64,000 bases of DNA from positions 1,178,001-1,242,000 of the forward strand of contig CM007990.1 of the NCBI GenBank assembly GCA_002189035.1. The letters run 5' to 3'. The DNA is from Utricularia gibba (taxonomy: Eukaryota; Plantae; Magnoliophyta). A program made the translations under genes and the position numbers. Within the stretch, counting starts at the first letter, position 1; each line of letters starts with the position of its first letter. Of this stretch, positions 5,943 through 40,594 are shown in pieces. Below the pieces are notes generated by a model. That model searched no databases and had not been told where the DNA came from. It worked only from the letters and a program-made list of their open reading frames with translations.

Positions 5943-7526
5943 ATGGGGAGAAGAAGGCTTGAGATAAAGCGAATCGAGGACAAGAGCGCTAGGCAAGTAA
6001 CATTCTCGAAGCGGAGGAATGGCTTGCTGAAGAAAGCCAGAGAACTGTCGGTTCTCTGCGGCGCCGATGTCGCCGTTGTTATTTTTTCCAGTAGCGGAAA
6101 GCCCTACAATTACTGCAGCAACAACAGGTTGGTTTCTTTGTATTTCATGCGTTATTTAGAACGAGATTCTAATCTTGATCTTCATCCAGCTTGGCCAAAA
6201 CGCTGAGAAGGTATTATAATCATGTTGAACCAGAATCAAGTCACCCCAGTGGCGTTTCTGATGACAAGGTACATGAATCTTTACATGAAAAAGGGTTATC
6301 CTTGGTGGATGATTTACCAGAAAAGGTTCAGAATTCATTCTACCTTTGAAAGTAGTAGAAGAAACATATTTTCAAATCCAGGGTTTGTGTTGCATTTGGA
6401 TGAGATATTGCATTCCATATTTGTGTCGTCAAGGCTCTCATTTGATGTTATGATTTTAGCTGGTTTTGAGGTTATGGATCCTGGATTGAATCTGTTGGCT
6501 GTTTTAGATGTAATGCTTTGGTTGGGGAGCAGAATGTTATTCACGTATGCTCTACATTTCTACATCAGGCTTGCAACTTTAAAGATCCAGAATACATCAC
6601 AAGAGAGGAGCTTCTTCAAGTTGTGGAAAGGCAATCATGAGTTTTGTTAATCCTCCGAATGAGTGACTGTGCTTTTAAAATATCACATTTGACACAGGGA
6701 ACTCGAGGAGCTGGATGGTGACCAGCGCAGCGATGTTGAACTTGTTCTTCTTGAAGACCAACTGCAGAATGCATTAGTGCAAACTAAAAAGGCGAAGGTT
6801 CCTTCTTTAAACCCCTCTCCAACTCTCGAAAAATGCATCTTATCAACGGCAGTTTTCTTGCATATCCCTAGGCCTTTGATGAAGTTTTACTCTGTTTTCT
6901 TGTTCATCGACGCGGTTGTCTTGACTACCAGCGATATGCTTTTTCTGATCCCTGTTTTTCCACACAAAGAAAGCCTGATTCAATTACTGTGCAGACGGAT
7001 TGGCTATTGAATGTCATCTCCAACCTGCAAGACGTGGTAAGAATTTAATATTCTCTATTGCCCTGCATACCAACTGTGGCAGCATATCGGTTTACCTTAT
7101 CACTCAGAAGTTCTTGATAGTAGATGAAATGGGGGCCTTTTCCATGCCCCTGTTCATCTTTGGAGTGTATCAAAAAAGAGAGAAATGCACTGGAACTATT
7201 CTGAGAACTAAACCACTGACTGTAACAAGAACAAAAGTCTTTGAACTCATACACCATACACAGATGCTCAAGTGATTCCTTTTTGCTACCAGGAAACCGC
7301 ACTATTGGATCAGAACAATTTCCTTGAGGACAAGGTAATCTACACGCCCTCTGACCATTACCAGCATTTGAGCATGCAGATTTGCTATCAAACACCAATG
7401 CTACATTCCATAATTAAGTTGGGATGCTGTTAAAGTGATCACAATTTGCAGATCAGCAGGAGCACTGTGAAGAATGCTGCTGCCCTGGATCTGAATGCGG
7501 TTCCTGATGGCTACCAGAGTTCATAG
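5943..7526 (+). CDS. FLC-clade MIKC MADS-box transcription factor, copy 1 (194 aa)
   Basis: Exons 5943-6127, 6190-6268, 6569-6630, 6698-6797, 6995-7036, 7293-7334, 7452-7526 (185/79/62/100/42/42/75 bp, typical MIKC sizes). MADS domain [25 protein letters not shown]; I/K region [30 protein letters not shown] resembles asterid FLC-like proteins as recalled. Intron 3 needs a GC donor. Confidence 0.88.
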
Positions 7527-10073
7527 GTTCAAGTAATCGTGCCATGTGATGGATGAGTAGAAGATTGGCATCTTTGCCAATCAGCCATTTACAGGTGGTT
7601 TTTGAAGAATGATCATCCATACTTTTGTGCATCTGAAAAATGATCCTTCACTAGTTCTGTTTTGTTTTGTTCATATTTGTGTAAGAAAACAAGATCCATG
7701 GTTATTTTTCAAAAGCAAGTACCATTTATTCACTCATACAGTAGCGCTTCACTGCAGAACCTCCTCTTTGCTGCATTTACTTCATTCTGTAACCTCCTTT
7801 GTACTGCATTTCTTGGATCTGATGTGTTATGGAGTCATTAATGTAATTACTATATATGAAAAATTTGATTAAAAAAAGTCACTTAAATGGAATTAATTGT
7901 TTTTAATAGAAAATTATTGTAATAAAAATTATACAAAAAATTATCAAAATAACATTTTCACTATAAAAGATGTAGCCAAATCTTTTTTGTCATAAATTTG
8001 GAAGAAATTGTAGTACATTTTGATGCATAGGTTAGAAAAACTTTTTGGAATCATTTGTTAGCTGTGTTTAGACATTTAAACAAAGTACATTGTAAAAGTG
8101 ACAATCATAAATTAAATGTGTAATAAAAATGATCATCATTTTAATGCGTAAGATAGAAAGAATAAAGATATCTAGATTTTTAAATGATACTCTAAAATGT
8201 ATGTTTTATATAACACGTGTTTCATATAATTGTTAAATAATATAGGTGATTTTTTTTAAATAATATGGGATCATTTTTTTTATATTTATCTTTTATTTTT
8301 ATTTTTGAATTAGATCAAATTTTTATTTATCAAAACTCATGAGTAAAAGTTATGAAAATGTAATATATACTTAATGGTTACTATTAATTATTATAAACTA
8401 TACTATTCATCTGAATAATTAACTTAAACACATGAACTATTAAATTATGCTGTCAAACATTCTCTTTATATGTTAAAAATAATACTCCAGTGTTAAATAA
8501 TACATCTATCAAAATATTTAATCCATATTATTATATATTAATTACCATCAACCTTATAGTTAATAAGTTATTTAGTTTTTTGTTAGGAACAAAAACTACT
8601 TTTGAAAATGGATTTGAAAAGTATTTTTTTATCCAATACAAATGATTTTTATTTTAAAAAACTAAAAAGTTTAAATTTTTTATTATTTTAAAACAAGCTG
8701 AAGAACCTTTCTATTATTAGAATTAATTTTAAAATTTTTTTTTAGAATCTTAACATTTGATATTCTACCAAATATATCCTGATTAATTCCTTACAAACTA
8801 TCTTACATTTGTGGGGATGAACAATATTGTTATGACATGTTTTTAAGGCATGTCATTCCCTATGTTTTTAAGTGTAGATGATTGAAAATTCAAAAAAAAT
8901 ATTAATATATTAAATGTTACAATTCATATTATTCTTATATGATATTGTTCGATTTAAATAATTAACCTTACAATTTATGTTCTTCACTTCCAAAAAAAAG
9001 ATTTTGTTTAAAATTATAGTAATCCATCTAGTTAAACATGTCTTCTTTCATATTGTTAACTAATATGTGATATTATTACTAGATTTACAACCTTACATTT
9101 TCTCTCATTTAGTTATTGAGTGTTCTCACTAAATAACTTGTCCCATCATTGAAACATGTATGTGTTTTGCAATGATACCAAATGTCATGATCTATATTAT
9201 TATTGTACTATTTTCCATTTAGATCACATACTTTTCCATGATTATACATTTTCTTTTTTTAAAAAAATATTCTTGAAAAAAATTAGAAAAATCTTTTTAT
9301 TTAAACATATTCTCTCATTTGTACATAACCAACGTCGTTACAATACCCTTGGTCTTAAAATAAAAATACAACTTATTTCAAAGTTTGAACGAACATCTTA
9401 AACTATTTAACAAGTAATTACATTCATTTTTTGTAGCATTTGACATCATTACATAGTTTTTCATGCAAGTTTTTTGTTTTGGCTTTGAATCCACATACTT
9501 ATAATTACATTTTACATTATTTAAATGAGAATTTAGAAACATTTTTGAACGACTTTTTCATAGAATTTCATTCTAATTTATTTAATTGAAAATTATGAAT
9601 GTTTTTTTTAAATAATTCTTTCGCATTTATAACGCTTCCCACATTCATGGCTCAACACAATTATCAAGAGAAACCCAACTTGTCGACGTGCCAAGCGCGC
9701 ATTGGATGTGTCACTTGTAAAACACAAGTGTTCTCACGTCGGGGTTGAACTCCCAAAACGACAGGATTGAATCGAATGGATTCGGATAAGGATGACGCCG
9801 GCGACGATTTTCTCGTTTCCCCCACCAGCCGACGTCGACGAACGGCGATCGACGATTTCGAACCAGATTCGGGTAACGCTGCCCCCACCATTCTCGCTTT
9901 CTCCATCAGCTTTCTGTGTTGTTCTTCTATTGTATCACGGTGCTTCCTCGACTGCACCTTGTCTGGAAGTGGAGCGCTCGAAAAAGCCAACTTTTCTGGA
10001 AATCGGAAAGGCTCTTACTCTTCTTCTCTATTTCTTTTTCGGCTACGACGCTAGAGATTTTGAGTTGGGGGAA

Positions 10074-12119
10074 ATGGGGAAGAGGAAGCTGGAGATTAAG
10101 CGGATCGAGAACAAAAGCGCTCGGGAAGTGACTTTCTCGAAGCGGAGGAGTGGTTTCCTGAAGAAGGCCGGGGAGCTGTCAGTCTTGTGCGACGCGGAAG
10201 TCGCCGTGATTATATTTTCCAGCACCGGAAGGCTGTACGAGTACTGCAGCCCTAACAGGTTCATTAACGTATTTCAGATCTCCTGTCTCTTTATATCTTC
10301 CAGCACCAGTATTAATCGTTTATTGGGGCGAGGCTGATGCTTTAGATGTTGACAAGTTTCCATCTTTTGACGACCTCATGAAAGAAATAGCTGTAATAAT
10401 GCCCTAGTTTTGCTTGTATCGAATTGTATGTGCCGATATCTTTTAACATGTTTCTGCACATGGTTTATTCATCCATTTGGTAGTTGATACACAGTTTGCT
10501 TTACATGCGTACAAATTTCTTTGTTCCCATCTTATGCTCATGAGCATTTTGATGTCCATGATCCACTACAGCACGATAAATTTCACAGTAAATGTTATCT
10601 TTAACACCATCAGGAGTACCCAAGCCCACTTTTCTCCTGTGATTTCTCTTCATCGCCAGTTATGACATGAGCATTGCCTAGAACCTTTGGTTCCTTCTTA
10701 TTATGATTTACTAACTGATAAGAAGTCCATATAGTGGTGCACTGAGAGATAGCGGGTTCATTCTCTTCACAATAAAATGCAAGCGATTGGCAAAAGCAAG
10801 AGTATGCTTTTGGTAGTGTATCAAACACGCTCTGGTGTGGTGGATATTGTTCTACAGGTTATAGTATTCATCTCTTCCCTTCACTATGATTTTTCAGAAG
10901 CCGTGTTATGATATTCACTATGTAAAAATGGGATATTTACCACTCTGAAACCTTTGTTATAATCAAGTGTTTAGATGATACCGAGTATAGTGAGGTAATG
11001 GGTTCATGATATCATATGTAAGAACTGATTTTCTTTCTGTTACTGCATATGTGGAAGTTAGAGATGAAATCATGTCGATTTTTTTAGAGAATACCAGAGA
11101 GAGAATTTCAAAAATCATGTGTAGAGAAGCAACATACGGTTTCCTTCATCGGTGTTTCAGGTTTAGAAGTTGCAGCTCATTTCATGTGGATGGCAGGTTG
11201 GATACGTAGGTTAGATGCTTAGAAACTGCAAGACGTCAAGATACTTCTTGGAAACATCATTATATATGAATTGAGAGAACACTGTAAACTCATGCGTTAA
11301 CTGAAGTATCAACCAGGGTGAAAGGAAAAAATGCTGATATCTAGGCATACTTGCCTTTTTTTCATGTTCTCATTATTGACTGTTAGTTTGTCTTTTCTTT
11401 CCTGTTTTCACTATCAAATTACAGCACTTTAACCTTGGATACACATTGTTTGACTATCACTAGCTTGGCCACAACCCTACGACGTTATTACAATTATGTG
11501 GGAACAAAAGCAAGCACACACACTGGAGATCCTGAGCAAAGGCAAATGAATTCCTATAATTTGTTCCTCAGTGCTTACTCTTCCTGGTCTTCCAGACGAA
11601 AGTCTGATGTTGCTTTTCCCTTTTTCTTTTACAGGGAACTTGAGGAGCCCTTTGATGCACAGCGCAGTGTGGCCAACCTTGCTCTTCTTGAAAATCAACT
11701 CAAAACCGCATTAATGGAAATAGAACGAGAGAAGGTTTCCTATCTAGTTTCCACCCGACTATTTTCTCATTCACTTCTCAAACATGCACCCACCGACATG
11801 TTTCGCAGCAGTTAGCATACAATGTAGTTTCTTTGTTGCATCTCTCAATACCTGTAATATGAATGGCTTTTCTGGTTTTCTCTACGTTGCTAACCCCTCC
11901 TTTCTCCTGTCCCCTTTGCAGCAGAATGCACTGGCAGAAGAACAGAGCCTCCCCGAGCTAGACAAGGTGATCATATACTTGTCCCAGATCATACTGAAAC
12001 GAGCTGCCTGAGCGAACGCTGATCAGTCTCCGCTCAACCTGCAGAGTGGCCGCAGCCACGAGAAGAACGCATCTATAGATCTCAATCTCCTCCCCGCCGA
12101 CGACGACAACCAAGACTAG
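10074..12119 (+). CDS. FLC-clade MIKC MADS-box transcription factor, copy 2, lacking the 62-bp exon 3 (~175 aa)
   Basis: Exons 10074-10258, 11464-11541, 11635-11734, probably 11809-11853, 11922-11966, 12045-12119. Open frame to a C-terminus [14 protein letters not shown]. Confidence 0.82.
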
Positions 12120-12180
12120 AACAATGAGAACGGCTCCCGCAGTTTGCTGCATCTGAACCTTTGAAGAACCATGTCGATGG

Positions 12181-12379
12181 CCGTACTGTTTCATGGCCCA
12201 TGTAGCTGACGTATTCCACCCTCTGAATTTTTTTTCATCTTATTTTTGTTAAATTTAATATTGTGCTGTTTGATTTCATGAGTACGAAGAAAATTGACTA
12301 CTTGCCATTATCAAGTTTCGAGTGGGCCCCGTGGATCTGTACGGACACTCCCCCGGTCGCATGGCGGTTTACTGTACGG
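12181..12379. promoter_or_regulatory. SBP/SPL-type GTAC sites plus a TCP site upstream of MADS copy 3
   Basis: CCGTAC at 12181, AGTGGGCCCCGT at 12321, TGTACGG at 12338 and 12373. Function inferred from known motif consensus. Confidence 0.55.
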
Positions 12380-12960
12380 ACGAGCCGACTTTTGGGGTAT
12401 CTGGGCCTTGTCTCAAGGTCAAGTTGTCGGCCCAATTGTTTTTTTTTTTTTTTTGCAAATTTGGTGATATTTTTATTACCTCCTTTTTTATGAAAAAACG
12501 GTGATTAAAATGTATTTAAATACGTAAAATTGTAATATTACGATTTATCGAGGGCAAAAATGTCACGGAATGATGGAATTTGTGTTTATTAATTAATGTG
12601 ATTTATTTTTTTTGTGTGAGAAGCTATTGACTACGTGAAGGCGCCATGGCTTTGACGTGGACAGCTGTCCGCTGGCCCCATTGCCTTTTACGAGAAAAAA
12701 GTAGAAAACCCCAATTGTCACGTCAAAATCGAACCGTAATTGAGGGCGATCGGGAGCTACCGCCGGCGAGTGTCTTCACCTCCGCCTTCCAGGCGACACA
12801 ATCGAATGGCCGACGAGGCTTCCCCGGCGGATTCTTTCACGTTTCCGCCGTAGTAGGCCCCACGCGTGGAGAGGATTCTGTTCCTATGCAACTTGCATGT
12901 GTTTTTTTTTCTTTTTTACAGTGGAATCTCGTCCATTCGTTTTGTGGAGCCTTCAAGACC

Positions 12961-13040
12961 TTACTGGATTACCTCCTGACAAGCTCTAGTTCTCCGGATT
13001 TTACTGGATTACCTCCTGACAAGCTCTAGTTCTCCGGATT
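12961..13040. repeat. Perfect 2 x 40-bp tandem duplication just upstream of the MADS copy 3 ATG
   Basis: TTACTGGATTACCTCCTGACAAGCTCTAGTTCTCCGGATT at 12961-13000 and 13001-13040. Confidence 0.97.
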
Positions 13041-13097
13041 TGGTGTTTCCCATACTTTCTCTTTGTCCGTACCCTAAATTTTGGGATTTCAGTACGA

Positions 13098-15430
13098 ATG
13101 GGGAGGAGAAGGCTGGAACTGAAGCGAATCGAAGATAAAAGTGCTAGGCAAGTTACCTTCTCAAAGCGTAGAGCTGGCCTGCTGAAGAAAGCACATGAAC
13201 TCTCGATTCTTTGCGCCGCCGATGTCGGCGTAATCATCTATTCCAGCACCGGGAAGCTATACCAGTTCTGCAGCGGCAACAGGTGCACTTCGCTTATGTT
13301 TTGAAGTTGAAGTCCGTACATATGATGATATTGCTCCATTGATGATGTCGGTGACTAGTTATGGTTTTGTTTCTTCCACATGGTTTCCATGGTTGATCAT
13401 TTCATTAGCACATATCAAGCTGATGCAATTTGCTGAGGATTCTCAGTTTCTTAAGACTTATAATCCATCATTTTCTTCGCATGTTATGGAATTCTCGGAG
13501 CATATCGGGATACTGGTGACAAGATATAACTTGCTTCCTGCTAGGAGTAAAAAGGGACCACTTGTTAATAGGTCTCTTTTGTCACCAATCATGCAAAGGC
13601 ACCACCTTCGATCACAAAAATTCAAAATGCAAAGTCGTCATTTGTAATCACACGCGAAAAATACATCAAAAAAAGACTACACTGTCAAGAGAAATGAAAA
13701 AAAAAAAAACTTAATGGTGACGCGTTGAGATTATTTTTTGGTTGACACCCTTGGTTGTGTTGAAGGAACCTGTAGTCGATACATAGGTTGAGTTAGTTTG
13801 TGAAATGTGTCGTTCTATGCCATCTGTTCATTACTTTCATTCTAGGCTCATTCTCTCCATCTTTGCCTTTAGTTTTTATGTTTTGGGGATTCCAATGTTA
13901 AAATCTTGCTTGGATGTTCTTTTCTTTGACTGTGCTAATTGTGTTATTGTCTCGGGCAGCGTGGTAGATTCTGAGTTCAACTATTCTCTCATTTTGCTGT
14001 ATCACGGCTTTATATTCTCTACCATAGAGCATCATTTGCTCTTCCAATGATTTCTTGATGTTGTATTAGATTTACTCCCCTCCCCTCTTGCAGATGCAAC
14101 TGCAGCCTTCAGATTTGAAATTCTATATTCGTGTATGGATTCTCAATGAACTATTTGATTATCTTCCAGCTTGTCAAGAACCTTATGGCGGTATTACAAC
14201 TATGTTGGGTCTGAAGCAAGCCCCGCCAATGGAGAGCGTAAGGAAAAGGTAAAAAATGAACCTCTAAAACATTAGTCTCCTTTCCTGTGGAAATGTGACG
14301 CTGATACATGTTCAAGTCTTTTTCTCCCTTTCTGTGGTTGTGGATGAATTGCTAGAAGAGTTTTCGCAGTGCAGTTTATAGCATGTATGAGTAAATATAT
14401 TATAGATAGCGTAATGCAAATAAAAATGTGTTTCTTTGATTTCAACTTGTCTTGATACAAATCTATGCCCTTCGTGTTCAGCGGTCATAAAGACAAACAA
14501 GTATTTTTCTGAGAGACAATAGATTGATAGTCAATTTTTAGTGTCGAAAGCATGCTCATATTGATAAACAATCACGGATAGCATGCTTTGGATAAACACA
14601 TGGAAGTAAGTTTTTGAGAGGTTCTCTTTCTTTTACATGTTCAGGCTGATTACTCCAAATATTCAGAATACATTACCAGCGAGGAACTCCTTCAAATGGT
14701 GGAGAGGTACTCAATTTGTTCATTCATGTTTACTTCTTGGCCTTCCAAATGAGCGGCTTTAGAGTCAAAATTTTGCATTTGTACAGCCAACTTTCGGAGC
14801 CCTGTGATGACCATGACAGCTTGGTCGACCTTGTTGTTCTTGAAAATCAGCTCGAAACTGCGTTATTGCAGATAAAAACAGCGAAGGTTTTCTTTGAATA
14901 CTTTCATGTTTTCTCAAATCTGTACGCTTGTTGCCTGGCATCTGCAGTCTTGCTTAGTCTCTGCAAATATTATTATCGACTAATCATCATTTTCTGTGTA
15001 TCCAAGATCATCATCGTTCAGCTCCTATGGTACATATATTTCATTCTTGATGATACTCACCATAAAATGCCAATTTTCTGCAGACCCATCTGCTACTCAA
15101 TACCATATCAGCCATGGAAGACAAGGTATATGAAGCATTCAAATTATGGATCTTGTATAAAAATCCATGGGGGGGAGGTGGGGATACTTTGCTTACACGA
15201 TTCCTTTTTCTGGCAGGAGAAGGCGCTGACCGAGGAAATGATTCTCCTTGAGGGCAAAAAGGTGACCACTCTCTGAATCTGAAGAGTAACTTAGCTTCAG
15301 GTACAATAGCGTTTCGTACATCAACGATGATCACAATTGACTCAACTTGCAGAATGTCCAAAAGAACGTGAATGTGAAGGAAGCAACTCTAGATCTCAAT
15401 ATGGCTCCTGATGACGAAAATGATGACTAG
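13098..15430 (+). CDS. FLC-clade MIKC MADS-box transcription factor, copy 3 (196 aa)
   Basis: Exons 13098-13282, 14170-14248, 14645-14706, 14787-14886, 15084-15125, 15217-15261, 15353-15430, all GT-AG and in frame. K region ..[24 protein letters not shown]. Confidence 0.92.
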
Positions 15431-15713
15431 AACTTGGGGTGTTCGAGGACGGGTCTGTTCGCTACTGTAATTTGCTACTGCATGCATCTGTTGGTTTCAA
15501 CTTCCATCTGTTGCCCCCGATGAACTTGAAGCTCTCCTCTCGAGGAGACAATAACTTTGATAGTCTGATTTGGTATGCAGTGGGGTTCTAAATCTGTTGT
15601 TTTCCTTTAGAATGATGTGCATTCGTGTCGTGGACGATGAATTTCAGCACACGCAGACAAGAGAATCGTGCATGGAAAACTAAAAAGAAACCACCTTTAT
15701 GTCATAAGACATG

Positions 15714-15990
15714 TGTACGGTCAGGGGGTATTACTGTACTGGTGCAATTGGGACTGACTGTACGGTCAGGGCATTATTGACACACGCTGGGGGGAATGGG
15801 GGTGGGGTAAGGGTATTCCGGACAAACGACTTCTGTACGGTCGGGGTATTACTGTACCGGTGGGGGGCGGGGGGACGAACTGTACGGTCAGGGCACTGTT
15901 GGCACACGTTCGTGGTAAGGGTTGCTCTGGACAAACGAGATCTGTACGGTCAGGGTATTAATGTAATAGCACAACGGAACTGTACGGTCA
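15714..15990. repeat. G-rich degenerate tandem repeat (~110-120 bp unit, ~2.5 units) with six TGTACGGTC motifs
   Basis: TGTACGGTC at 15714, 15759, 15834, 15881, 15943 and 15981; the landmarks GGTATTACTGTAC, CACACG, GGTAAGGG and GGACAAACGA recur per unit. Confidence 0.93.
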
Positions 15991-16036
15991 AGTGGCCATT
16001 ATTGAGGAGAACGAGTGGCCAGTAGCATGGGTTTTT

Positions 16037-16078
16037 GTGGACCCGATTCAGTGGGGCCCTATGCTAAGTGGGCCCCGT
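16037..16078. promoter_or_regulatory. Three TCP-type GTGGNCCC/GTGGGGCCC sites upstream of MADS copy 4
   Basis: GTGGACCC at 16037, GTGGGGCCC at 16051, GTGGGCCC at 16068. Confidence 0.6.
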
Positions 16079-16362
16079 TTCGGTCGGCAAGCGAAGAGCA
16101 GGAGGTTATGGGCAGCTCAGCTCATCCAATAATTACCTTCTTTTCATCTCCGGAGAAGACGTTTGCTCATGTCGTTTGTTGCTTGAAAACGACGGTGAAT
16201 GCATATGAAAAGCTTTGACCTCTGGAGTTGAGTTCGCCGCCGCGAATGTGCTGCCCGTAGAGGACGACGCGAAGTAAGGTCCTCAAACGTTGGAAAATTT
16301 TGTGAGTCGTCTACTGCCGTTCCTCTTCCCTTGGAACAAGAAATTTCTGGATTTGAGTTGAG

Positions 16363-18887
16363 ATGGGGAGGAGAAGGCTGGAGATGAAGCGGATCGAGGA
16401 TAAAAGCGCTAGGCAGGTGACGTTCTCGAAGCGGAGAAAGGGACTACTGAAGAAGGCCAGGGAACTCTCGGTTCTTTGTGGTGCCGATATCGGCGTGGTT
16501 ATCTACTCCGGTACAGGAAAGCTGTACGAGTACAGCAGCACTAACAGGTAATTGCCTTTCAACCTTGTGCGTGTCTCCGATTGCCGAGGTACTCTCCAGT
16601 TCTTCACTTTCTAATTCCGAGACCGTACATGTGATAATGCCCCAAGGTTGATAATTTGGCTTGGGGAGCTTTCCTCCTTGAAATAAGCATCTTGTCAGTG
16701 TTCAACCTTTGTTTTTGGTTCACTTGGAAATTTGCAATTCTCTTACGAAGATATTCATTTTGTCATGCAAGTTTCTAAGGAATCTGCTGTTTTAGTGTAC
16801 AAAAGCCCTTTCATGGAAGATATACATAAGTTCATGAGATGGGAAATTTGTGAGTTTCATGCAAATAGTTCTAGGTCTATTAAACACATGAAACCGTGTT
16901 AAAAGCATTGACCTTTTTTCTCTTTAAGCATGATGATTCTGTGTTCAAATATCCATTTTTTTGAAGAAGGTAAAAGTCCAGAAACCCAACCCTACCCCTA
17001 AATGCCTTGATTAAGTTTTTTGGGAAGTGTGGTTTGCTTACAAATTTGTATTTGTACATTCTTCCCGGCCCACTCGATCTTATATGCAGTAGTACAATAT
17101 TGATCTCCATTGTCCTACCATTTAAGGAAGTCTTGACGCGGGTCATGGTACTTCATATTCCTCCATGTCATGCCCCACTTTTTTGGTTGTATTGGCTGGC
17201 CATTCATGATTCCTCCTACGTTTTGTTGGAACATGGTTTTAGTTTCTCATTTGAAAACCTGTCAAAAGCACCAAGCCTGGTGTAAATACCAATGATAAAG
17301 CATAAAGATGAGCTTCATGTTGTCAACTGTAGAGCACTATCTCCTCTCACAGCAATTTCTCGATGTTTTCAATATATGTGTCTGAATTCTTGCTGAACCT
17401 TGAAATTATCCAGCCTGACAAGAACCATATGGCGGTACTACAATTATGTTGAATCTGAAACCAGCCTGGCCACTGGAGATCCAAAGGAAAAGGTAAAAAA
17501 TGAACTATTTTTATCTTCTTGTTCATTTACAGCACCCATGTCGTCCGCTGAGAATCCCTTGATAGCTTACCGACATTTTCTTCCTATTTGTGAGAGCTAA
17601 TGGATGATCAGCAGATTTCGTGCACTAGCCAACACTGCTATATTGTTGTATGAGTGAATAGGGGTATAAATATTTTCATGCAGGTTAAAGTTAAAAAGTC
17701 ATTCTTATTTTTAACCAGCAATATTAATTCTAACAAAGCTAGTGATAAAGTGAGCTTATTTATCAGAGATGCACATGGCAGCATGTGAGATTATCTGCAG
17801 GTCCCTGCCATTTTACAGAAGCAACAATATTTTGAGAGGCTCTCTCTCTGTGTTTCTTATCAGGCTGATTACACCAAGCATTCAGAATACATCACAAAAG
17901 AGGAACTCCTCCAAGTTGTGGAAAGGTGCCCCCAACTTTTATTCCTGCATGTTTCTTACTTTCTTGCCACTCTGAATGAGAGAATATACATACTCTCAGA
18001 ATTGTTCATTTTCACAGAGAACTTGGGGAGCCCTCCAATGACCAGCGTAGCGCTGTCGACCTTGTTCTTCTTGAAAATCAACTTGAAACAGCTTTACTAC
18101 AGATCAGGAAAGCAAAGGTTTCCCTTCCCTTTCAACCACACTTTTGCTGTTGTATCCATCACTTGCCTCTGAGATCTCCACGCACCCTCTGGGACCAGCT
18201 AGAGAGTTTTTTTTCTCCCTTCTTAAATCAACTGTCTTGTCCCTGACCTCATTATTGTCACTTCTTTTTCAGACGCATTTGCTCCTCAATACAATATCAA
18301 GTCTGCAGCATGAGGTACAAAGCCACCCAAATAAACTACATAAAACAAGAGAAGCTAGCTAGCACGTGATGCTCACCTGATTCCTTTTGCTGGCAGAAGG
18401 ACCTGCTGTCAGAGGAAAACAGCCTCCTCGAGACAAAAAAGGTGATCACTCTCTCAAAATGAAGACCAATTACATAATTCTAAACTCCATGAGAACGAGT
18501 TTTGAGAACAAAACTCCACACAATGAATGCTTCATTTCACTTCACTGAGTTTTTTTTTTTTTTCAAAATCATGTAAAATGGGATGTTATAGAATTTTAGT
18601 TGTATGATTTAAAATAAAAATAGATTTCATGATATTAAATTCAGTTATGTAGAAAATAGTTTTGAAGCTTTTAGAAGGTTTAAATTATTCCTTTGAAATA
18701 AAACTTACTACTAAACACTACCTTAGAGTTTCGGGTTTGATTACCCTTTAAAATAGTATCTTATACATTAAAAAAACATGAAAATTTTTTAATTTTTTTT
18801 AGACTAATGTTGCAGGTTGGCACAAGGAAGATGGAGGTGAAGAAAATAGCCCTAGATCTCAATGTGGTTCCTGATGACCAAATCTGA
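16363..18887 (+). CDS. FLC-clade MIKC MADS-box transcription factor, copy 4 (194 aa)
   Basis: Exons 16363-16547, 17414-17492, 17864-17925, 18018-18117, 18273-18314, 18397-18441, 18816-18887, all GT-AG and in frame. Confidence 0.92.
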
Positions 18888-20863
18888 AAATTACAATGTA
18901 TCATGAAATTGGTTGTCATCTATTTTTTTTCGTATTAAATAATATCATAATTTCAAATATATTTTTACATATTTAATCGTATTTCAAAATTTTTAAAAAC
19001 TTGTATCGTATGAATAACATTGATCAATAACATATAACAATGTTCAATTTTCTTGCTTTTTATTTTACAATGTTTCTCATATAATACAAAAATATTATAC
19101 ATTTTTTTTGGAATTTTATGGGAGGATGGCATGGTAAAAAAAGTTGATATTGATAGATCACATTTTCTTGCATAGTAAGTGTCACCAAAACTTAAAAGAG
19201 TCATGAAAATAGTTTCATATGTTGTATTTTGGATTATTTAGACTTGAAAAACTATAAAATAATTTAAATAAATTGAATGATAATTATAAAAATTATTGAA
19301 AAGGATGTAATTTATGAATTATTAAAGACAATGAATTAGCTAAAAAATGAATGATAGTTTATACATTCAATCTTTTGAATAATTGTATGTTAGAATTTAA
19401 TATTTTAAATCCTTTTTAATGTTGAAAAATAAAAAATATCTATTTATTGATAAAAAAAACGTAAGAGAGAACAAAATTTTGACATATTTTTGTAAATATC
19501 TAATGTGTTTTCATATTAACACACATAAGTTATATTAAATTAAAAAATAATATTAAATTAACAATTATATATGCTATTAAGTGTGGGCCTGGGCTGGGGC
19601 CCATGTCCACATCCACTACTTAACAGTCATTCTCATTGAATTTGATTTAACAGGGGCACTTTTGGAATTTTGTGAACAATTTTATTTTAAGAATCATTTA
19701 TACATGTTTGAAAGTAAAAATGATTATTAAAATAAAAATAATTTTTTCATGAAGAAAAACTAGTTTTCATATCCTATCAATCAAATTCAGTTAGAGTATT
19801 AACATTTCTATTTTTTAAATATGTATTGAAAAAAAGATTTTCAAATATTTCATAATTTTATTATATGAACAATGAATTTTGAGAATTAGTATAATTCTAT
19901 TAAAAGTTTGAGATGTTAATTTGTATTAAAATTGATTTTTAAGAATAAATTCTAAAATTTAAATTTATAATTATATTCATATTTTTATAATAAGTACAAT
20001 CATTTGTTTTTTAAAAATAAATTTAATTTTATAATATTTTTTAAATAAATATTGAAATATTTAAAAATTATTATAGTAATGTAAAATATAATATTTTAAA
20101 ATATAATACTTTATAAACTTTATTTTTTTACTTATAAAAATCACTTATTATTATTATTTTCACTCTAAATATAAATAAATTTTATAATAATTATTTTTAA
20201 AAATACATTCTAGCAAAATTTTAAATTTTATTTGGACTAATATTTTAAAACCTAATTTTAATTTATTTGAATTTAAATAAAAATAATCTAAAATTAAGTC
20301 TTTACATAATATTCAATTAATATTAAAACATTTGAAATTAAATAAAAAAAATATAAGAATATCACTACCTTCATATAATAAACAAAACTCTCTCTATCTC
20401 GAATTTATTTAAATATACGAAATAAATACAATATAATTTACAATACTTATATTAAACCCTTGCAATCCCATGAATCAAACACACATGGCGCAGGAGATTC
20501 TCCAGGTGGAGAACTCAAACTCAGGCCTTCCTTCTTCTTGTGTCATGGCCAAAGTACACACAGACAGCGCGTGGATCACCGTCGCCGGCCATGTCCGGCG
20601 ACCGCCATTGTCGTCACTTGTTGTGCTGAGAACACTATACAGTTTGGGACAGCTACTCTACTTCCTATACGGTGCAAGAGAAGCCTGCCTGCGATGCCTT
20701 TCCACAAAGAATCTTCTTCTACAGGTGGCTGTGGATGCACCTGCTGTGGAAGAAGAAGCCACCGGAAGATGCCCATGAGGGTGATTCTGTGGGAAACGAG
20801 GCGGAGATAGATGGATGTGGTGGACTCACAGTTGTGGAAGGATTCTGAGAAGTTTTCTAGCTG

Positions 20864-23800
20864 CTACTGATTCTCGTCTGAGGTTTGAAAGAATCTTGAG
20901 ACTTCCCAGTAGAGTTGCTCGGCCTCGAACGGCTTCGAGACGTAGCCATCCATTCCGAATTTCGAGCACTTCTCGTTCGTCGCCTGGATCACGTCTGCTG
21001 TCATTGCAAGAATGGGCACGCGCCAGCTTTTCTCGTTGTCCTGTTGGGAGAGTTCTCCGGTTTGGACGCCATTGGTGAAGCTAGTTTCCACTTCCCTTAT
21101 TCTCCTTGCAGCTTGGAACCTGCATCATGACCAAGGTGATTGGTTGGCTGGGAATGAGGTTCTTTGCTATGGATTTGGGGTGATGTGGTTACCCGTCCAT
21201 TTCCGGCATCTGTATGTCCATGAAACAGGCATCGAAGCGATGGGGAGGTGTCAGCAAGGAGATTGCATCTTTCCCACTCTCTGCAACGGCGACTTCAGCT
21301 CCGTACTTTTTCAGAGCACCGGCAGCAACTTTCAGGTTCACTGGATTGTCATCCACGACCAGAATCCTTCTCCCTGAAAGGAGGCTACCGAGGGGCTGTG
21401 TCTTCAGCTCGCTGTTTCCCCGATGCCCAACACCCATTGCTCGATGGAGGGAAGAAGCAAGCATCCCGGCGCGCAGCGGTTTCATGACCACAAACAAGGG
21501 ATACCCATCGGAGGTAGCCCTGATGGAGCTTCCGGCGGCATTGGAGAGGACGGCTATCTTAGGCTCCACTCTCTGATTCTTTCTCAACTCCTGCAGTAGC
21601 ATGGGAAGGAAGCAAGAATCCTTGTCCAAGGCTTCTTCTTCCATGAAAACAATGTCCACATCTGTGCTCCGGGAGCTCAAATCTTGGAGTTCTTCGACTT
21701 TGATGCCAAGCCGTTCAATGTGATACTTGGACACCTTGCGACGGATGGGATTGGAATCCAGAAGCAAGGCCGTCAACCCACAAAACTCTGGAAAACTTGA
21801 GTATGATTGATCTCCGGCGTCGTGGCTCGCCTCAGAAGAACACCCCTTTGTGAAAACAGCAGTGAAAGTAAACGTGGAACCGACTCCCGGCGAACTTGCC
21901 AGCCCAATCTCCCCTTTCATCAGCTGGACTAAGCATTTGCTGATGCTTAAACCAATCCCAGTTCCACCATGGGTTCTGGTGATCGATGGCTCCCCTTGCA
22001 TGAAGGGGTTGAAGACCTTCGACTGAGCTTCTAAGGGTATCCCTTGGCCTGTGTCCTCAACTGAAACAATTATGTTCACGTGATCGCCCAAGGACTGCAA
22101 TGAGGAAGAAGATGATGATGCAGACACTGCTGCTTCTTGATTGAAAACTCTGAATCCTGCCCAGCTTTTCCTTCTGTCAACTACAGGGTGACCACTTAAG
22201 GATCTCGTTGAGCAGAATTCTGGTTCTGTTTCCTCTACTTCTTCACAGAGATGCACCGTCACAAAGACATGCCCTTTTTCAGTGAACTGCAAGCACAGGT
22301 TCACATGAACTTGTTATCTCAGATCGACCTGAAGAAAGGAAAATGAAACTTACTTTAATGGAGTTCCCAACTAGATTCATTACTATCTGTCGAAACCGGC
22401 CAGGATCACCAACTAGTGTGGCAGGGACTTTGTTGGAGACATACACTGCCATCTGTAATTGCAAAAGGAAAAAAAAGCATCTTGATTCAGAGAATGAAGA
22501 CTATACAGGAGGCCAAAGGTCTTCCTTTAACAAAGAGGTTCAAAGCAGAGTAGGTAAATGCAACTCCCAGTTTGCTCTCAGAACCAGTTTACAGTAAGCT
22601 CTATCTTACCTCAACATTACTGCCTTGATACTTTCCAGAAAATAGAGACAAGACATCATCAAGGATTGACCTCAGGTCAAAGCTGACAGCTTCTAGCTCA
22701 AGTTTACCAGATTCGATCTTTGCCTGGTCCAAAACTTCATTTATGAGTGAAACCAAAGCTTTACCGCTCTCTCTAGCGGTTCTGACATAGTCCTCTTGAG
22801 TCTCATCCAGGTTTGTATCTCTAAGCATTTGCAGCATTCCTAAGGACACAAAGTTAAAATACATCCCTCAGATTTGAACTTTGATTTGTGTAATGAGCAT
22901 CGAATTTTGGAGATGGAAAGGGAAATATTCTGTCCACTGACCTAAAACACCATTCATGGGAGTTCTGATTTCATGAGAAACAGTGGCAAGGAACTGGAGA
23001 AAAAGGGTCTCAGTTAGATGCTTAGAACTTGGTGCTAAGCAAACAACAAAGTCAAAAGACCTGTGATTTGGCTATGTCAGCATCCTCAGCACGTCTCTTA
23101 AGCTCCATCATCTGTTGGTAATCATCTTCTACTTTTGCAATCCTGTTCATGGTGGCATGGAATATATGCCCTATGAGCATAACAATTATGAGACCACCAA
23201 CTGAAGTAGTTATTGCAACCCATGGCCATGGTGGTTTTTGCTGGAACCTGCATCATAAGTACTTCCCCATGAGCAAACTACTTCTTTATCAGAGCCAACA
23301 TAACATATGTTTCAGACAAAGTAGTGTCTTCCACCATGGAATAAGGTAGAAGAAAGAAAAAAGAAGGGAGTACCTGCAATGCATTTCATGCTTTCGGAAC
23401 GGATCTCCGAAGTTAAGACTGCTAACATGATGTAATCCATTTCGAAAAGTGTTTGAGCCATACATACTAATGGGGTTGAAGGAATCAGTAGTGTCATAGA
23501 CATTCACAAGTATGGCCTGTTTGCTAGCAAGCTGGTGAAGTAGTTTCTCTACAAGTGATTCAATGTCAAAGATCCCACCAAGATACCTATTTGAAGAAGA
23601 ATCAAAACCCATCACTATCACTCAAGATCATGCCACAGACAGAGAAAAAAAAATTCAAACTTGAGCCAGTTGAGAGGGCAAACTTTGTATTTTCAAGGCA
23701 ATTTTCATACCCTGCAGTAGCTTGGATCCTTTCAGCAACAGTTGGATTGGTGGGAAGATCCCATTTGTAAATAGCAAAAGTCAGTATAACTCCGAGTCTA

Positions 23801-24901: not shown

Positions 24902-26815
24902 TTAAACCAAGAAGGAACTTCTGTAACTCCACCACAAGCTTTCAGTTGCTTGCTATATATTGGAGTTTACTGCTACAAACTCTACAGTAGCCTTGCAGCT
25001 GAAACTCCGCCCATTTCCCAGTTGCTTTAGGTTTCGGAAACCCGGACAATAATGCCGTTGCCCGAGTAAAATTGCTTCAGACTCACGTCTGGGTGACCAA
25101 GGAACGTGGGCGCGCAGAACAATTTCTCAAACAACGAGAGAGAAAGAAAACAAAGGGCTTCAAGATTCCAACATTTTTTTGAAACAAGGGAGAACAATAT
25201 GATAAAACTAGGAGACAAATGCGCTCCAAAAGCAACTAAACACCATTCTCGGCAACAGCATGAAGAATCAGCATCCCCTCCAAAGAACGAATCTGCAGCA
25301 AACACTGTACTTGAAACAGCGTTTCAAGTTCAAATTCCTCAAAATAAGCAGGAAATATGAAATGGGATTACTGAGAGGGACACTTCAGACATGGGACAAC
25401 TCGTACCCAGACGTGAGTTAAGTAACTAGACTCGAAAGATTGATCGCAACAGTTGATAAAGTAGCTACCAAGAGGGCTAAAAAAAAGTAGCTTGGGAATA
25501 AAAATATAAACTTGGGATTCATATGGACGCTATACAACAAGAATCAGGGAAAGCAAGACGATAGGAATACGGTGGTGGTGACAAAAGGTCTGCACCCCCC
25601 TGCCCCTGCTCTGCCACCATTATCTCTGACTAACGCATTTCATCCATTCACCAATTCTATCTATCTTCAATCTCTATCTCCTACACAAAGATCTGCACAA
25701 TTGAGGAAACAGTGCAGTTTGTTTCTACTATCCCAACTCCTTTAGTAACTTCATTGACAAACAAGCATCATACTGGTAGAAAAACAGGATCAATAATTCT
25801 TGCTGAGAGCGCAAAAAAGGTATATTCCCCCACCAACACTCCGATAAAATCACACCACTGGCTTTCCTCTGATGGGGTTGCTCCCCACGTCCTCCACCTC
25901 AATAATCACAACTTTTTGGTTATCCTTTTGAGTTACCACCCATTGGTTAAAAGCTAGATCTCTGAGTCAGCCACCGTTAAGTTTCAGTGCAAGTTCAAGT
26001 ACTGTTATCATTTTCAGTTCGGGAGACACGTTACTATGCACAACAACACAAAGCTTTCTTTTTTATTTCCTTGTGTGTGTAGGTGTCTCCTGAAAACATG
26101 CTTACTGTTCACAGAAAATGCACACCACCATCAAAGATTATGCCTTTTGCATGATGGCATTTAGTGTAAGCATCCAACAAACCAGCTTCATCTCTCCTGT
26201 GATTGGTGCAGTAGGGCCAACTGCCATAATCTTGTCTACGACTCCTTCAAAGCTTACTTATGTGCGACCAGGTGTAACCCATTCATAATCCTTGCTCAAA
26301 TACAACCTTTTTGGAGCTGGTTTCGCAAAAAAACATGTGCAAAGCTAACGCCATCACTGCTTACACAAAAATGCGCAGATGGGTTGTAAGCCTTACTTTA
26401 TCTTTTTCTTTATACCAAGAAACACAGAAAATGCATATTTGATGTCCGCAAAGACCACCGACGATGGCAAATGAGATATTATCCTCTCCTCTAGGGTATA
26501 ACCGTCGGAAAAATGTTAATGGACGACGGATGGCCTCTGCAAAGGTGACAGCCCATGAATCCGTGGCATCTTCATACGTCGTTTCCTGTTCTGGAAAACT
26601 CACGATCATCGTTGTACTCTGCTTTTTTTTTGTATGGAGTGGTTCATTGGGAATTTCTGTGTAGATAAATTTAATTATTTATAAATGTCAAAATCCATTT
26701 TATTTTATAATATTATATATTATAAAAATTTTACGATTTTACATTATTCTATTTTAAGAAAATGGGATGAATACATAGAGTTTTAATCAGGATTTTCTGA
26801 GAATAAAATCATTTG

Positions 26816-27077
26816 ATAGTGTTTGAATTAATAATATTTAAAGTAAAAATTATAATTATACCATGTTTATTTCATAAATTTAAATAAGATCGATATTAAT
26901 AATTTTATTTAAAATCATATTTATCCTTTATTTTACATAAAACGAATTGTTTCATATAAAAATCTAAGTCTAATCCCACTAACTAATACAATATATAAAA
27001 AAAACGAATATCTTTACATCATCTTTATTTAAATCCAACAAAATTAAATTATCTTAATTTCGTCAATCAAACACTAT
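26816..27077. mobile_element. Putative AT-rich MITE-like element
   Basis: Perfect 11-bp terminal inverted repeat ATAGTGTTTGA (26816) / TCAAACACTAT (27067-27077) around a non-coding AT-rich interior; no clean TSD. Confidence 0.4.
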
Positions 27078-27550
27078 TTTAATGATTGGATTGATGGTAA
27101 CATCATCTAAAGGGAATGAGGAATCTTGAAATTTGGTATTAAATCCAAATCAAGGGCACCAATCTTAGTGGCATGATTTTTAATAAATATTCATACAAAA
27201 TGCATGATTAACTTGTGTGAAATTGCAACTTTATAACTATGCCTATAATTGAATTGTTTAAGATATGCTTAATACAAATTTAAGAAATAATTCCAAATAA
27301 ATAATTCCTAAATATTCATAATTTAGAAGTGCTTTAAAAAGCCTTGAAGCTAATGACATTATACTTCAAAAAAAGAACATTTCAAAATTGTTGATTTTTT
27401 TTGAAGTGTTTTTCACATACATATATATATATATATATTTATTTATTTATTTATAATATAAAAAATATTTTTATAGATTTTTTAGAAATGTATACCACCC
27501 ATCAAACTTTAAAAAACAAAGAGGAACCCCATGCTAATATTTGCGTTATA

Positions 27551-28508
27551 GTGATAACCAAGTGATGAATTCAAATGTATGGGACATTTGAACTAAAGTA
27601 ATAAACTATGGTAATCAATCCATATTTTGATTATTTCAAACGTGAACATGAACTTATGTCAAATTAGTTTGTATTATATTGGGACAACTAATTGATAACC
27701 AAGTGATGAATTCAAATGTATGGGACATTTGAACTAAAGTAATGAACTATGGTAACCAATCCATATTTTGATTATTTCAAACGTGAACATGAACTTATGT
27801 AGAGCAAGTTTGCATTATATTGGGATAATTAAGTGATAACCAAGTGATAAATTCAAAATGAATGGTACATTTGAACTAAAGGAATGAGGTATGGTAATCA
27901 ATATATATTTTGATTATTTCAAACTCGAGCACGAATTTATGTAAAACTAGTTTGCATTATATTGGGACAACTAATTGATAACCAAGTGATGAATTCAAAT
28001 GTATGTAACATTTGAACTAAAGAAATGAACTATGGTAATCAATCTATATTTTGATTATTTCAAACTCGAGCACGAACTTATGTCAAATTAGTTTGTATTA
28101 TATTGGGACAACTATTTGATAACCAAGTGATGAATTCAAATGTATGCAACATTTGAACTAAAGAAATGAGCTATAGTAATCAATATATATTTTGATTATT
28201 TCAAACTCGATCACGAATTTATGTAGAGCTAGTTTGCATTATTTTGGGATAATCAAGTGATAAATTCAAAATGAATGGTACATTTGAACTAAAGGAATGA
28301 GATGCTGCAATCAATCCATATTTTGATTATTTTGAACTCGAGTATGAATTTATATCGAGCTAATTTGTATTATAGGACAATCAAGTGATAAGCAAGTGAC
28401 AAATTCAAATGAATGGGACATTTGAACTAAAGAAATAAGGTACTTCAACCAATCCATATTTCAATAATTTCGAACTTGAGCAGTAACTTATGTGGAGCTA
28501 ATTTGCAG
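27551..28508. repeat. Satellite-like tandem array, ~7 units of ~141 bp, with trimeric higher-order structure
   Basis: The unit anchor GATAA(C/G)CAAGTGA occurs at 27553, 27694, 27835, 27977, 28118 and 28387; the sixth unit has a short deletion. Periods are 141-142 bp. Confidence 0.96.
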
Positions 28509-29906: not shown

Positions 29907-32139
29907 ATGTGGCTGCCTTTTGTGGTCTTTCTTGAGCTGGGCTTACTTCTGGCGAGTTCTGTGACTTGTTTAACTATAGATGGACTCTCATTACTCTCCC
30001 TGAAATCTGCCGTAGACGGCGGTTCCGCTGCCATCTCTGCTTTCTCCAATTGGAACGACGGTGATGAGACGCCGTGTAATTGGTCGGGGATAGAGTGTTC
30101 GAATATTCCCGGGTTAGATGAACCCCGTGTCGTGAGGGTATCGGTGGCCGGAAGAAACCTTCGAGGGTACATTCCATCGGAGCTAGGCGAGCTTTCATAT
30201 CTCCGGCAACTGAACTTACATGGGAATAACTTCTATGGTTCTATCCCTGCTCAGCTTTTCAATGCTTCCTCACTGCACACTCTTTTCCTCAATAGTAATA
30301 ATCTCTCTGGTCCATTACCACCTTCTTTGTGCACTCATGTTCGCGTCGAAAATGTCGATTTTAGTAACAATTCGCTTTCCGGCCCATTGCCGGAGTTCCT
30401 CCGCAACTGCACCGAGCTGAGGAGGCTGATTCTCGCCAGAAACAAGTTTTCCGGCGAGATTGCAGATAATATTTTCCCTGGTTTGGCTAACTTAGAGCAG
30501 CTTGATTTATCTGTAAATATGTTCAGTGGCCCAATCCCTGTTGATATTGGAGAGCTGAAATCAATTACAGGGACACTGAATCTGTCTTTCAATCATTTCA
30601 CCGGAAATATCCCAGAAACCTTGACCAACTTGCCACTTACAGCGAGGTTTGATCTCAGGAACAACGATCTGAAAGGTGAGATACCAAGATCAGGATCTTT
30701 TGCAAACCAGGGTCCATCTGCATTCTTGAACAACCCTGACCTTTGTGGCTTTCCCCTGCAAACTAGATGTAAGAATGATTCGGATTTCAAATCAACCACA
30801 CCAGATGCCTCGGGAAACAATGGTGTTCATCGGAAGAAAGGGATGAATCCGGGCTTGATAATACTGATCACAGTTGCTGATGCTGCAGCAGTGGCATTTG
30901 TAGGAATGGTGATAGTTTATGTCTACTGGAAGAAGAAGGATTCTCATGGATGTAGCTGCACTAGGACGGCAAGGCTGGGAGGGTCGGGGAAGGTTCACAA
31001 TGGATGTGTATTCCCATGTATGAGTACTCATTCCTTCAACGATTCTGAGATGGAAATGGAGATGGAGTCCGAGAAAAGCGGAGGCTGTACCAGCCGGGGT
31101 ACTAGCTGTGGAGAAGGGGAACTTGTTGCTGTTGATAAAGGTTTCAGCTTTGAGTTGGATGAGTTACTTAGAGCATCAGCTTATGTTTTGGGAAAGAGTG
31201 GAATCGGCATAGTGTACAAGGTGGTGCTTGGAAATGGAGTTCCGGTGGCTGTGAGGCGTCTCGGAGAAGGTGGCCAACAGAGGTATAAAGACTTTGTTTC
31301 AGAGATTCAGGTCATCGCACGAGTGAAGCATCCAAACATTGTGAAGCTTAGAGCTTACTACTGGGCGCCAGATGAAAAGCTTCTGATCAGTGATTACATC
31401 TCTAATGGGAATTTGGCTTCAGCTCTTCGTGGTGAGTAGATAGTTTTCTTCGTTTATGTCTCACCAAGATTGCTGCTTTCTGAATTGAAAAGGTGATCGT
31501 GTGTTTGTGAGTACAGGTAACGAAAACCAGATGTTGTCATGGAGAACAAGGCTGAAGATTGCGAAGGGAGTGGCACGGGGATTGGTTTACCTCCATGAAT
31601 GGAGCTCTCACAAGTTCATCCATGGAGATATAAAGCCCACCAACATTCTCCTTGATGATGAATTCCGGCCATATATCTCCGATTTCGGCCTCAAACGCCT
31701 CGTAAACATCACCGGAAATAATCCTTCTCCCGGTGGGCTACTACCGTATGTCAAAACATCGCAACCGGAGAAACCGAATCACTACCGTGCGCCAGAAGCG
31801 ATGATTTCTGGAGCTCGGCCTACGCAGAAATGGGACGTATACTCATTTGGAGTGGTTCTGCTTGAAATGTTGACCGGGAAGTCGCCGGAGCTTTCACCGC
31901 CGACAACCTCCACCGCAACGGAGGTACGCGATCTCGTGGGGTGGGTCAAGAGAGGTTTTACACAAGAAAGCCCCCTGTCCGAAATGGTTGATCCTCTACT
32001 GCTACAGGAAGTTTATGCAAAGAAAGAAATTCTTTCCGTGTTTCACATAGCGTTGGCTTGCACAGAAACGGATCCTGAAATCAGACCAAGGATAAGGATT
32101 GTATCTGAAAATCTTGATAGAGTTGGCATGCAGAGCTAG
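29907..32139 (+). CDS. LRR receptor-like kinase (LRR-III, At1g67510/ZAR1-like), 2 exons (29907-31431, 31517-32139)
   Basis: Signal peptide, LRRNT (WNDGDETPCNWSGIEC), LRRs, TM helix, FELDELLRASAYVLGKSG, VAVRRL, HGDIKPTNILL, SDFG. Confidence 0.95.
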
Positions 32140-39935: not shown

Positions 39936-40356
39936 AAAACAAAATCCTGAACCTTACACTATTGTTAGTACGAGTAGAATTGAAGGTGACCTATCACACC
40001 CAAAGCGATGGATGTGTAAATTTAAATGGATGTATGATTGGCTTTAAAATCATGGTGTGAATGCAATACCATCATGTGTGAACCATCCATCTCAGACAAA
40101 TAAGATATTATATTTATAAAAAAAGGTCGTAATTATTTGCTGGTGGGGCCCATTGCGGGTCCCCATTAATTTACAATTTTCTGGTGTAATTTTCCTGCAT
40201 TCCTACGCTTTAGTCGTTCTAATTCCACGTTACAGCTGCTATACGCTTCGAGTGTTGAAAGTCAACCAATCTAGTTTGGTGTAACCGCAAAGTCAACAGC
40301 AGCATAGTTGGTCTTCGGACAAGTTGTGTTACTATGGATTATGTGATATGTAATTT

Positions 40357-40594
40357 AAACATTGTTTTGAAAAAAATTTTAAACTTGTTTTTACTTTTTA
40401 AAATTATTTTTAAAAAGTATAAATAAATAGTAAAAATAACAAATTCATTACTTTTTCGAAAATAAATTTTATACTTATAATTTTAAAAGTATTTTTGCTA
40501 AAAGTATTTTTACAATTAAAAGTATTACAAAATAAAATTATTTTTACTTTTGAAAAATATAAATATATTTTAAAAATTTTCCAGAACACTGTTT
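40357..40594. mobile_element. Putative degenerate AT-rich MITE-like foldback element
   Basis: AAACATTGTTTTGAAAAA (40357) versus TTTTCCAGAACACTGTTT (40577-40594) form a 15/18 inverted match; TSD unclear. Confidence 0.35.

Follow-up and report, generated by a model that had tools for sequence, protein, structure and literature searches.

Tandem arrays of FLC/MAF genes are already known, as are repression motifs in MADS repressors. Proteins of the FLC clade are repressors, and the Arabidopsis genes MAF2-5 form a tandem array. Here we describe four FLC-like MADS genes in a 64,000-nt stretch of the Utricularia gibba genome (contig CM007990.1, positions 1,178,001 to 1,242,000 of the forward strand; hereafter the window, in which all positions are counted). 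Close to its C-terminus, each of the four encoded proteins carries a DLNxxP motif of the EAR type (amphiphilic repression associated with ethylene-responsive element binding factors). FLC and MAF1-5 of the Brassicaceae resemble the window proteins in belonging to the same MIKC clade (support 100/99), in a length of ~195 aa and in having seven exons (185/79/~62-68/100/42/42 nt before the last), and MAF2-5 share the tandem arrangement. They end, however, in (V/E)TL(P/S)LL(N/K), whereas the window proteins are devoid of the terminal TLxLL, and the last exon of the window genes (72-78 nt, stop included) is shorter than the inferred ancestral one of 105 nt.

The same subclade and the same C-terminus were found in Perilla frutescens C2S52_007046, Salvia AGL27-like proteins, Sesamum indicum AGL27 X4, the Torenia fournieri 'RIN-like MADS-box protein' B2DCP7 and an array on chromosome 11 of Erythranthe guttata. 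The Perilla homologue is a single gene of 20.8 kb, whereas the window genes are present fourfold and measure 1.6-2.5 kb each. The Erythranthe copies have an alanine where the window motif has a proline. A vernalization quantitative trait locus of Mimulus contains a tandem MAF/FLC-like pair (PMC4856076).

EAR motifs serve as recognition sites for TOPLESS and SAP18; they have been reported in more than 20 Arabidopsis MADS factors (PMC6639411). The consensus is DLNx(x)P, ideally (L/F)DLN(L/F)xP (PMC9956375, PMC6639411). C-terminal DLNxxP motifs have been studied experimentally in the class II ERFs AtERF4 (LDLDLNLPP) and AtERF7 (DLNFPP) (PMC9956375). Among MADS proteins, SVP requires LRLGLP to bind TPL and to repress FT-like genes (bioRxiv 10.1101/2021.11.23.469726). 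Similarly, AGL15 binds SAP18 (PMC6639411) and recruits SAP18/TPL via a C-terminal short motif (PMC6639411, PMC9956375). SVP and AGL15 are, like the putative repressors of the window, MIKC proteins with a C-terminal short motif. Their motifs are of the LxLxL type and occur in other clades, whereas the window motif is of the DLNxxP type that characterises class II ERFs and C2H2 zinc-finger repressors. The six tandem DAM genes of Prunus share a conserved C-terminal EAR motif (PMC5800298). DAM1-6 thus parallel the window array as tandem MADS repressor genes with such an ending, but they belong to the SVP clade, not to FLC, and represent an independent rosid case.

Four intact MIKC-type MADS genes follow one another head to tail at 5943-18887, all on the + strand (Table 1). 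The gene models were built by reading frames across the conserved blocks common to the four units (pairwise blastn) and were spliced by hand; the open reading frame was kept through all four. An earlier sequence-only reading of this DNA had proposed a tandem quartet, each member ending in a DLNxxP heptapeptide. The quartet proved to have exactly four members, as no further MADS or K exon was found elsewhere in the 64-kb window, and the translation of all four heptapeptides was exact. In each protein [L/I]DLNxxP lies 6-11 residues from the C-terminus, and all four heptapeptides match the DLNx(x)P consensus. When the entire 64 kb were scanned in six frames for [LIVMF]DLN..P, the four motif sites and one stop-containing match in an AT-rich spacer were returned, far more than expected by chance (mean of 0.16 matches in 200 shuffles). 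No EAR motif of the LxLxL type was found in the four window proteins.

Table 1. Positions of the FLC-like genes, their exons and EAR-type motifs, and of neighbouring open reading frames (ORFs) in the window
Feature	Position	Strand	Basis and remarks
FLC-like copy 1	5943-7526	+	194 aa; predicted splicing
Copy 1 exons	5943-6127, 6190-6268, 6569-6630, 6698-6797, 6995-7036, 7293-7334, 7452-7526	+	
Copy 1 EAR-type motif, LDLNAVP	7485-7505	+	translation; 7 residues before stop
FLC-like copy 2	10074-12119	+	173 aa; predicted splicing
Copy 2 exons	10074-10258, 11464-11541, 11635-11734, 11812-11853, 11925-11966, 12045-12119	+	
Copy 2 EAR-type motif, IDLNLLP	12075-12095	+	translation
FLC-like copy 3	13098-15430	+	196 aa; model and RNA contigs
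Copy 3 exons	13098-13282, 14170-14248, 14645-14706, 14787-14886, 15084-15125, 15217-15261, 15353-15430	+	
Copy 3 EAR-type motif, LDLNMAP	15389-15409	+	translation; exon in spliced transcript
FLC-like copy 4	16363-18887	+	194 aa; model and RNA contigs
Copy 4 exons	16363-16547, 17414-17492, 17864-17925, 18018-18117, 18273-18314, 18397-18441, 18816-18887	+	
Copy 4 EAR-type motif, LDLNVVP	18852-18872	+	translation; exon in spliced transcript
Neighbour ORF with Pfam match	21189-22304	-	
Neighbour ORF with Pfam match	29907-31439	+	
Neighbour ORF with Pfam match	32252-33877	+	
Neighbour ORF with Pfam match	34049-36111	-	
Neighbour ORF with Pfam match	37317-38258	-	
Neighbour ORF with Pfam match	48893-50914	+	
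Neighbour ORF with Pfam match	60682-62145	+	
Neighbour ORF with Pfam match	62819-63613	-	

The exon sizes were 185/79/62/100/42/42/75 nt in copy 1, 185/79/62/100/42/45/78 nt in copy 3 and 185/79/62/100/42/45/72 nt in copy 4. Copy 2 consists of six exons, as the exon for the first K-domain helix (exon 3 of the other copies) has been lost. A MADS domain is encoded by all four first exons, each of 185 nt (Pfam PF00319/SRF-TF, E 8.7e-29 to 2.2e-26). Copies 1, 3, and 4 align end to end with PF01486-bearing homologues (e.g., residues 1-196 of copy 3 with residues 1-198 of P0170), while exon 4 of copy 4 alone gave a weak K-box match below the cut-off (E 0.004). Protein identity among the four paralogues is 47-69%, copy 2 being the most diverged with 47-51% identity to the others; judged by these values, the paralogues of the array are old.

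All introns are of the GT-AG type with two exceptions, namely intron 3 of copy 1 (6631-6697), with the donor AG|GCAATC, and, in copy 2, the intron that follows exon 2 (11542-11634, 93 nt), with the donor AG|GCAAAT. Both GC donors are located at or adjoining the position where other copies show GT. Specifically, the donor of copy 1 intron 3 is GT in copies 3 and 4, and the GT donors close to it in copy 1 would disrupt the frame. The frame of copy 2 survives either splicing of exon 2 to exon 4 or retention of the 93-nt intron (stop-free ORF 11435-11815), so that both isoforms would keep the EAR-type tail.

RNA contigs of the set X1 carry all predicted GT-AG junctions of copies 3 and 4, with intron 1 of copy 3 represented by loose ends. 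The junctions into the last exons are among them (15261|15353 in copy 3 and 18441|18816 in copy 4). One X1 contig of 593 nt joins all seven exons of copy 4 across six introns, whereas in copy 3 introns 2-6 were seen as joints and intron 1 was deduced from matching loose ends at 13282 and 14167. Copies 3 and 4 at least are transcribed and spliced as modelled. The claim that the last exons are part of the transcripts was thus borne out for these two genes, and for copies 1 and 2 it stands on the models. Unspliced X1 contigs of low depth (6-11, compared to 150-350 for exons) cover intron 4 (14878-15089) and intron 1 (13253-14196) of copy 3; they look like intron retention, pre-mRNA or other unspliced RNA, or DNA carry-over. 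At 18846, X1 has G where the window has A, which changes the isoleucine two residues ahead of the copy 4 motif to valine and leaves the motif the same. Because of this change and many intronic differences from the window sequence, X1 is taken to stem from another genotype.

Relatives were sought by querying 1.8 billion cluster representatives with the MADS exon of copy 1. The best full-length relatives, one protein each from Erythranthe and Torenia and a Brassica FLC fragment, served as queries in turn. The closest proteins are merely 53-57% identical to the window proteins, and the window's own four proteins were not among the matches in these protein database searches. The source names of the relatives were AGL27, AGL31, MAF5-like and FLC-like, besides some automatic names of the SEP/AP1 type. 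Several database proteins with two MADS stretches (P0166, P0005/P0423, P0010) look like fused predictions of adjacent MADS genes; these fused-looking proteins comprise a Solanum verrucosum protein of 294 aa, Zingiber proteins of 328-330 aa and a DAM-like protein of 452 aa.

In a maximum-likelihood (ML) tree of 62 rows, all four window proteins fell into a 53-row FLC clade (100/99). This clade also includes Brassica and A. lyrata FLC, Arabis PEP1, four MAF-type proteins, and rosid and asterid FLC-like proteins. Outside it stood the representatives that we take to be of SEP/FUL, PI, and SVP type, an outgroup classed by its signature motifs, not by database names. The window quartet forms one group (100/99) inside a core-Lamiales clade, with Oleaceae copies as the next relatives. 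A second tree, from which the last 26-40 residues of every protein had been removed, retained both the Lamiales (100/99) and the quartet (100/99). The sister position of the quartet to Torenia in the first tree (97/86) was discarded, as it was lost without the C-terminal columns, leaving a polytomy within the core Lamiales.

The gene structure was compared with published FLC-like genes of core eudicots, which have seven exons with exons 1, 4, 5, and 6 of 185, 100, 42, and 42 bp, and inferred ancestral sizes of 185/79/68/100/42/42/105 (PMC4852290). The layout of the window genes fits that of the FLC subfamily, copy 2 minus exon 3. Since trees and exon layout agree, membership of the four genes in the FLC/MAF clade and a lineage-specific fourfold expansion in this core-Lamiales plant are well supported by the sequence data. 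The assignment to the FLC clade made in the sequence-only reading was thereby upheld in a MIKC phylogeny, the genes being those of an asterid, and its proposal of an independent expansion agrees with the grouping of the quartet in both trees. Automatic homologue names such as EJ2-like, CMB1, RIN-like, and CAULIFLOWER point to SEP or AP1 and could suggest that the genes belong to another MIKC clade (SEP, AP1/FUL or SVP) and are mislabelled here. We give this next to no credence, as the tree groups the genes with Brassicaceae FLC, PEP1, and MAF (100/99) and leaves the SEP/FUL type outside, and as they have seven exons with FLC-specific sizes instead of eight.

The motif stands out against its surroundings. 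Among the four paralogues, 4-6 of the 7 motif residues are identical, compared to only 1-2 identities in the 10-12 residues before it, in agreement with the earlier remark that the remainder of the last exon is poorly conserved. Between the last exons of copies 1 and 4, only 28 nt around the motif still align as DNA. Inside the motif, codons differ synonymously among the copies and from Perilla and Erythranthe (CTG/CTC for Leu, AAT/AAC for Asn, CCT/CCC/CCA for Pro). Because synonymous codons differ, selection would act on the peptide and not on a nucleotide element or through recent gene conversion; together with the unconserved flanks, these differences point to selection on the peptide. A nucleotide-level element behind the conserved block, such as a small-RNA target site, was ruled out by the variation at synonymous sites. 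Tandem Repeats Finder detected no repeat in 15500-16350.

Since all four genes are paralogous members of a single array, sequence sharing alone is no proof of selection. The motif might thus be a neutral relic of recent duplicates, or of homogenisation by gene conversion, with no selected function. This is strongly disfavoured and very improbable, as the copies are old (see the identities above), hardly any similarity is left in the rest of the exon, synonymous changes have accumulated within the motif, and the motif has been kept in at least 10 other genera of several families.

Among the proteins fetched, nearly every FLC-like protein of the core Lamiales terminates with [ILVMF]DLNxx[P/A] and, after it, a short tail of mostly acidic residues. 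The form with proline was found in Perilla (IDLNAIP), five Salvia species, Sesamum indicum (LDLNIIP), Torenia (LDLNALP), Phlomoides (IDLNMVP), and transcript-derived (Logan) proteins. Erythranthe, Andrographis, Primulina, Penstemon, a second Sesamum lineage and one Salvia copy have the form DLNxxA. On the tree without C-terminal columns, DLN is present in 28 of the 29 core-Lamiales rows, and the pattern amounts to a single gain and a single loss (INLNVIP), plus a parallel case (VDLNNIAP in a solanaceous-type protein). DLNxxP was absent from the fetched proteins of Oleaceae, other asterids, and rosids, with the exception of one solanaceous-type DLNxxxP. Likewise, none of 119 Brassicaceae FLC/MAF proteins contains it, in line with the sequence-only reading, to which no such motif was known from that family. 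The only LxLxL matches in these Brassicaceae proteins (LMLKL and similar) were not accepted as EAR candidates, being located within the K-domain helix encoded by exon 5.

Outside the core Lamiales, the C-terminus of FLC-like proteins is longer and bears a terminal TLxLL, for example VTLPLLN in FLC, ATLSLL and ATLHLL in rosids, TLNFL in Solanaceae, and LLDLL in Oleaceae. In place of DLNxxP, an upstream motif occurs, such as MDLSALP in Fraxinus, MDLDVLS in Forsythia, MNLNNIAP in Solanum, and EFGDLTHV in Coffea. As the simplest reading of these sequences, an older lamiid motif was probably sharpened to the canonical DLNxxP as the terminal TLxLL was lost; the shorter last exon of the window genes fits this loss. 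Judged by the proteins compared, DLNxx[P/A] plus an acidic tail is the defining end of core-Lamiales FLC-like proteins.

The structural setting was assessed with the AlphaFold model of the Torenia homologue, which served as a proxy for the window proteins (59-sequence alignment). In this model, residue 178 is the last of the K helix, and the motif (183-189) belongs to a tail without helical structure that has a predicted local distance difference test (pLDDT) score of ~50. For the proxy protein, such a placement would be as expected of a short linear motif.

As a working model, we propose that the exposed tail of the FLC-like proteins is an EAR motif that docks co-repressors, a reading that we hold to be slightly favoured by the evidence. 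The MADS domain would bind CArG boxes of floral-promoter genes, the K domain would build dimers or tetramers, and the free DLNxxP-type tail would dock TOPLESS/TPR or SAP18 co-repressors. These in turn would bring histone deacetylases, so that the repression module would be part of the proteins themselves. Copy 2, which is devoid of the first K helix, may differ in its choice of partners. Both co-repressor binding and a floral-repressor role of the four proteins are what we infer, and so is the 'active repression motif' of the sequence-only reading. In its C-terminal position and in the hydrophobic residues after N, the window motif resembles the AtERF4/AtERF7 type. Several points weigh against the co-repressor model. 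Its basis is the sequence of DLN-type FLC-like proteins, and the structural data come from the Torenia proxy. The consensus proline is not universal in the core Lamiales, where many proteins have DLNxxA. The presumed precursor motifs of Oleaceae and Solanaceae are off the EAR consensus, so that the constraint may predate TPL binding and be unrelated to it. Furthermore, copies 1 and 2 are known as predicted splice models only, which require GC donors.

Part of these observations could also be explained if the DLNxx[P/A]-acidic tail were a lineage-specific form of an older lamiid motif with a job other than co-repressor binding, e.g., MADS partner selection, protein stability or localisation, its match to EAR being incidental. 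At the same position, Oleaceae (MDLSALP, MDLDVLS) and Solanaceae (MNLNNIAP, SDLPAP) indeed have related but non-EAR motifs, alanine replaces proline in many core-Lamiales proteins, and a composite signal is suggested by the basic run KKKK, frequently found ahead of the motif in other Lamiales. We consider this explanation the main rival of the co-repressor model, but less likely than it: D, L, and N are invariant in the fetched DLN-bearing proteins, FLC-clade proteins are generally known to repress, the related MADS repressors SVP and AGL15 are documented users of EAR motifs, and mostly hydrophobic residues fill the two positions following N, as they do in EAR motifs of the ERF type (PMC9956375).

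The co-repressor model can be extended to the history of the clade, for which we offer a tentative scenario with somewhat less than an even chance of being right. In the core-Lamiales ancestor, FLC-like proteins would have lost TLxLL while the upstream motif became a true DLNxxP EAR motif that recruits TOPLESS/HDAC (histone deacetylase) directly and not via partners like SVP. The fourfold array, with one copy devoid of the first K helix, would then consist of self-sufficient repressors tuned in dosage or in partners.

Around the array, spacers of 26-32% GC (8000-10000, 18900-20000, 26000-28000, 40000-42000, and 54000-58000) alternate with gene-rich stretches of ~40-48% GC, with high gene density and introns down to 62 nt. 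Eight neighbour ORFs gave Pfam matches (Table 1). The kinds represented were the receiver region of an AHK4/CRE1-type histidine kinase, an LRR receptor kinase, two PPR proteins, an ankyrin-repeat protein, a BAHD-type acyltransferase, a KUP/HAK potassium transporter and a RING-H2 protein. Among the neighbour ORFs of the window, there was no SEP3- or AP1-like gene adjoining the FLC-like array. The homologue loci of Perilla and Erythranthe, fetched as the queried gene alone, contain none of the window's neighbour genes.

The novelty that the sequence-only reading had assigned to the motif was sustained in part. The motif is already widespread in database proteins of the core Lamiales and, being common to that group, lowers the novelty of the window locus. 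No paper on an EAR motif in FLC-clade proteins was found in the full-text literature, from which most subscription journals are excluded. The DLNxxP ending of FLC-like proteins itself thus seems to be undescribed, though visible in databases. Gene predictions that skip the last exon of 72-78 nt would hide it.

Silencing by the FLC clade is partly understood, and the mechanistic work comes almost entirely from Brassicaceae. A clade-wide EAR-type ending offers a simple repression hypothesis for sesame, mints, sages, perilla, and other crops and ornamentals of the Lamiales. It also provides a dated example of the gain of one short linear motif and the loss of another. The motif would also constitute a mutational handle on flowering-time control outside Arabidopsis.

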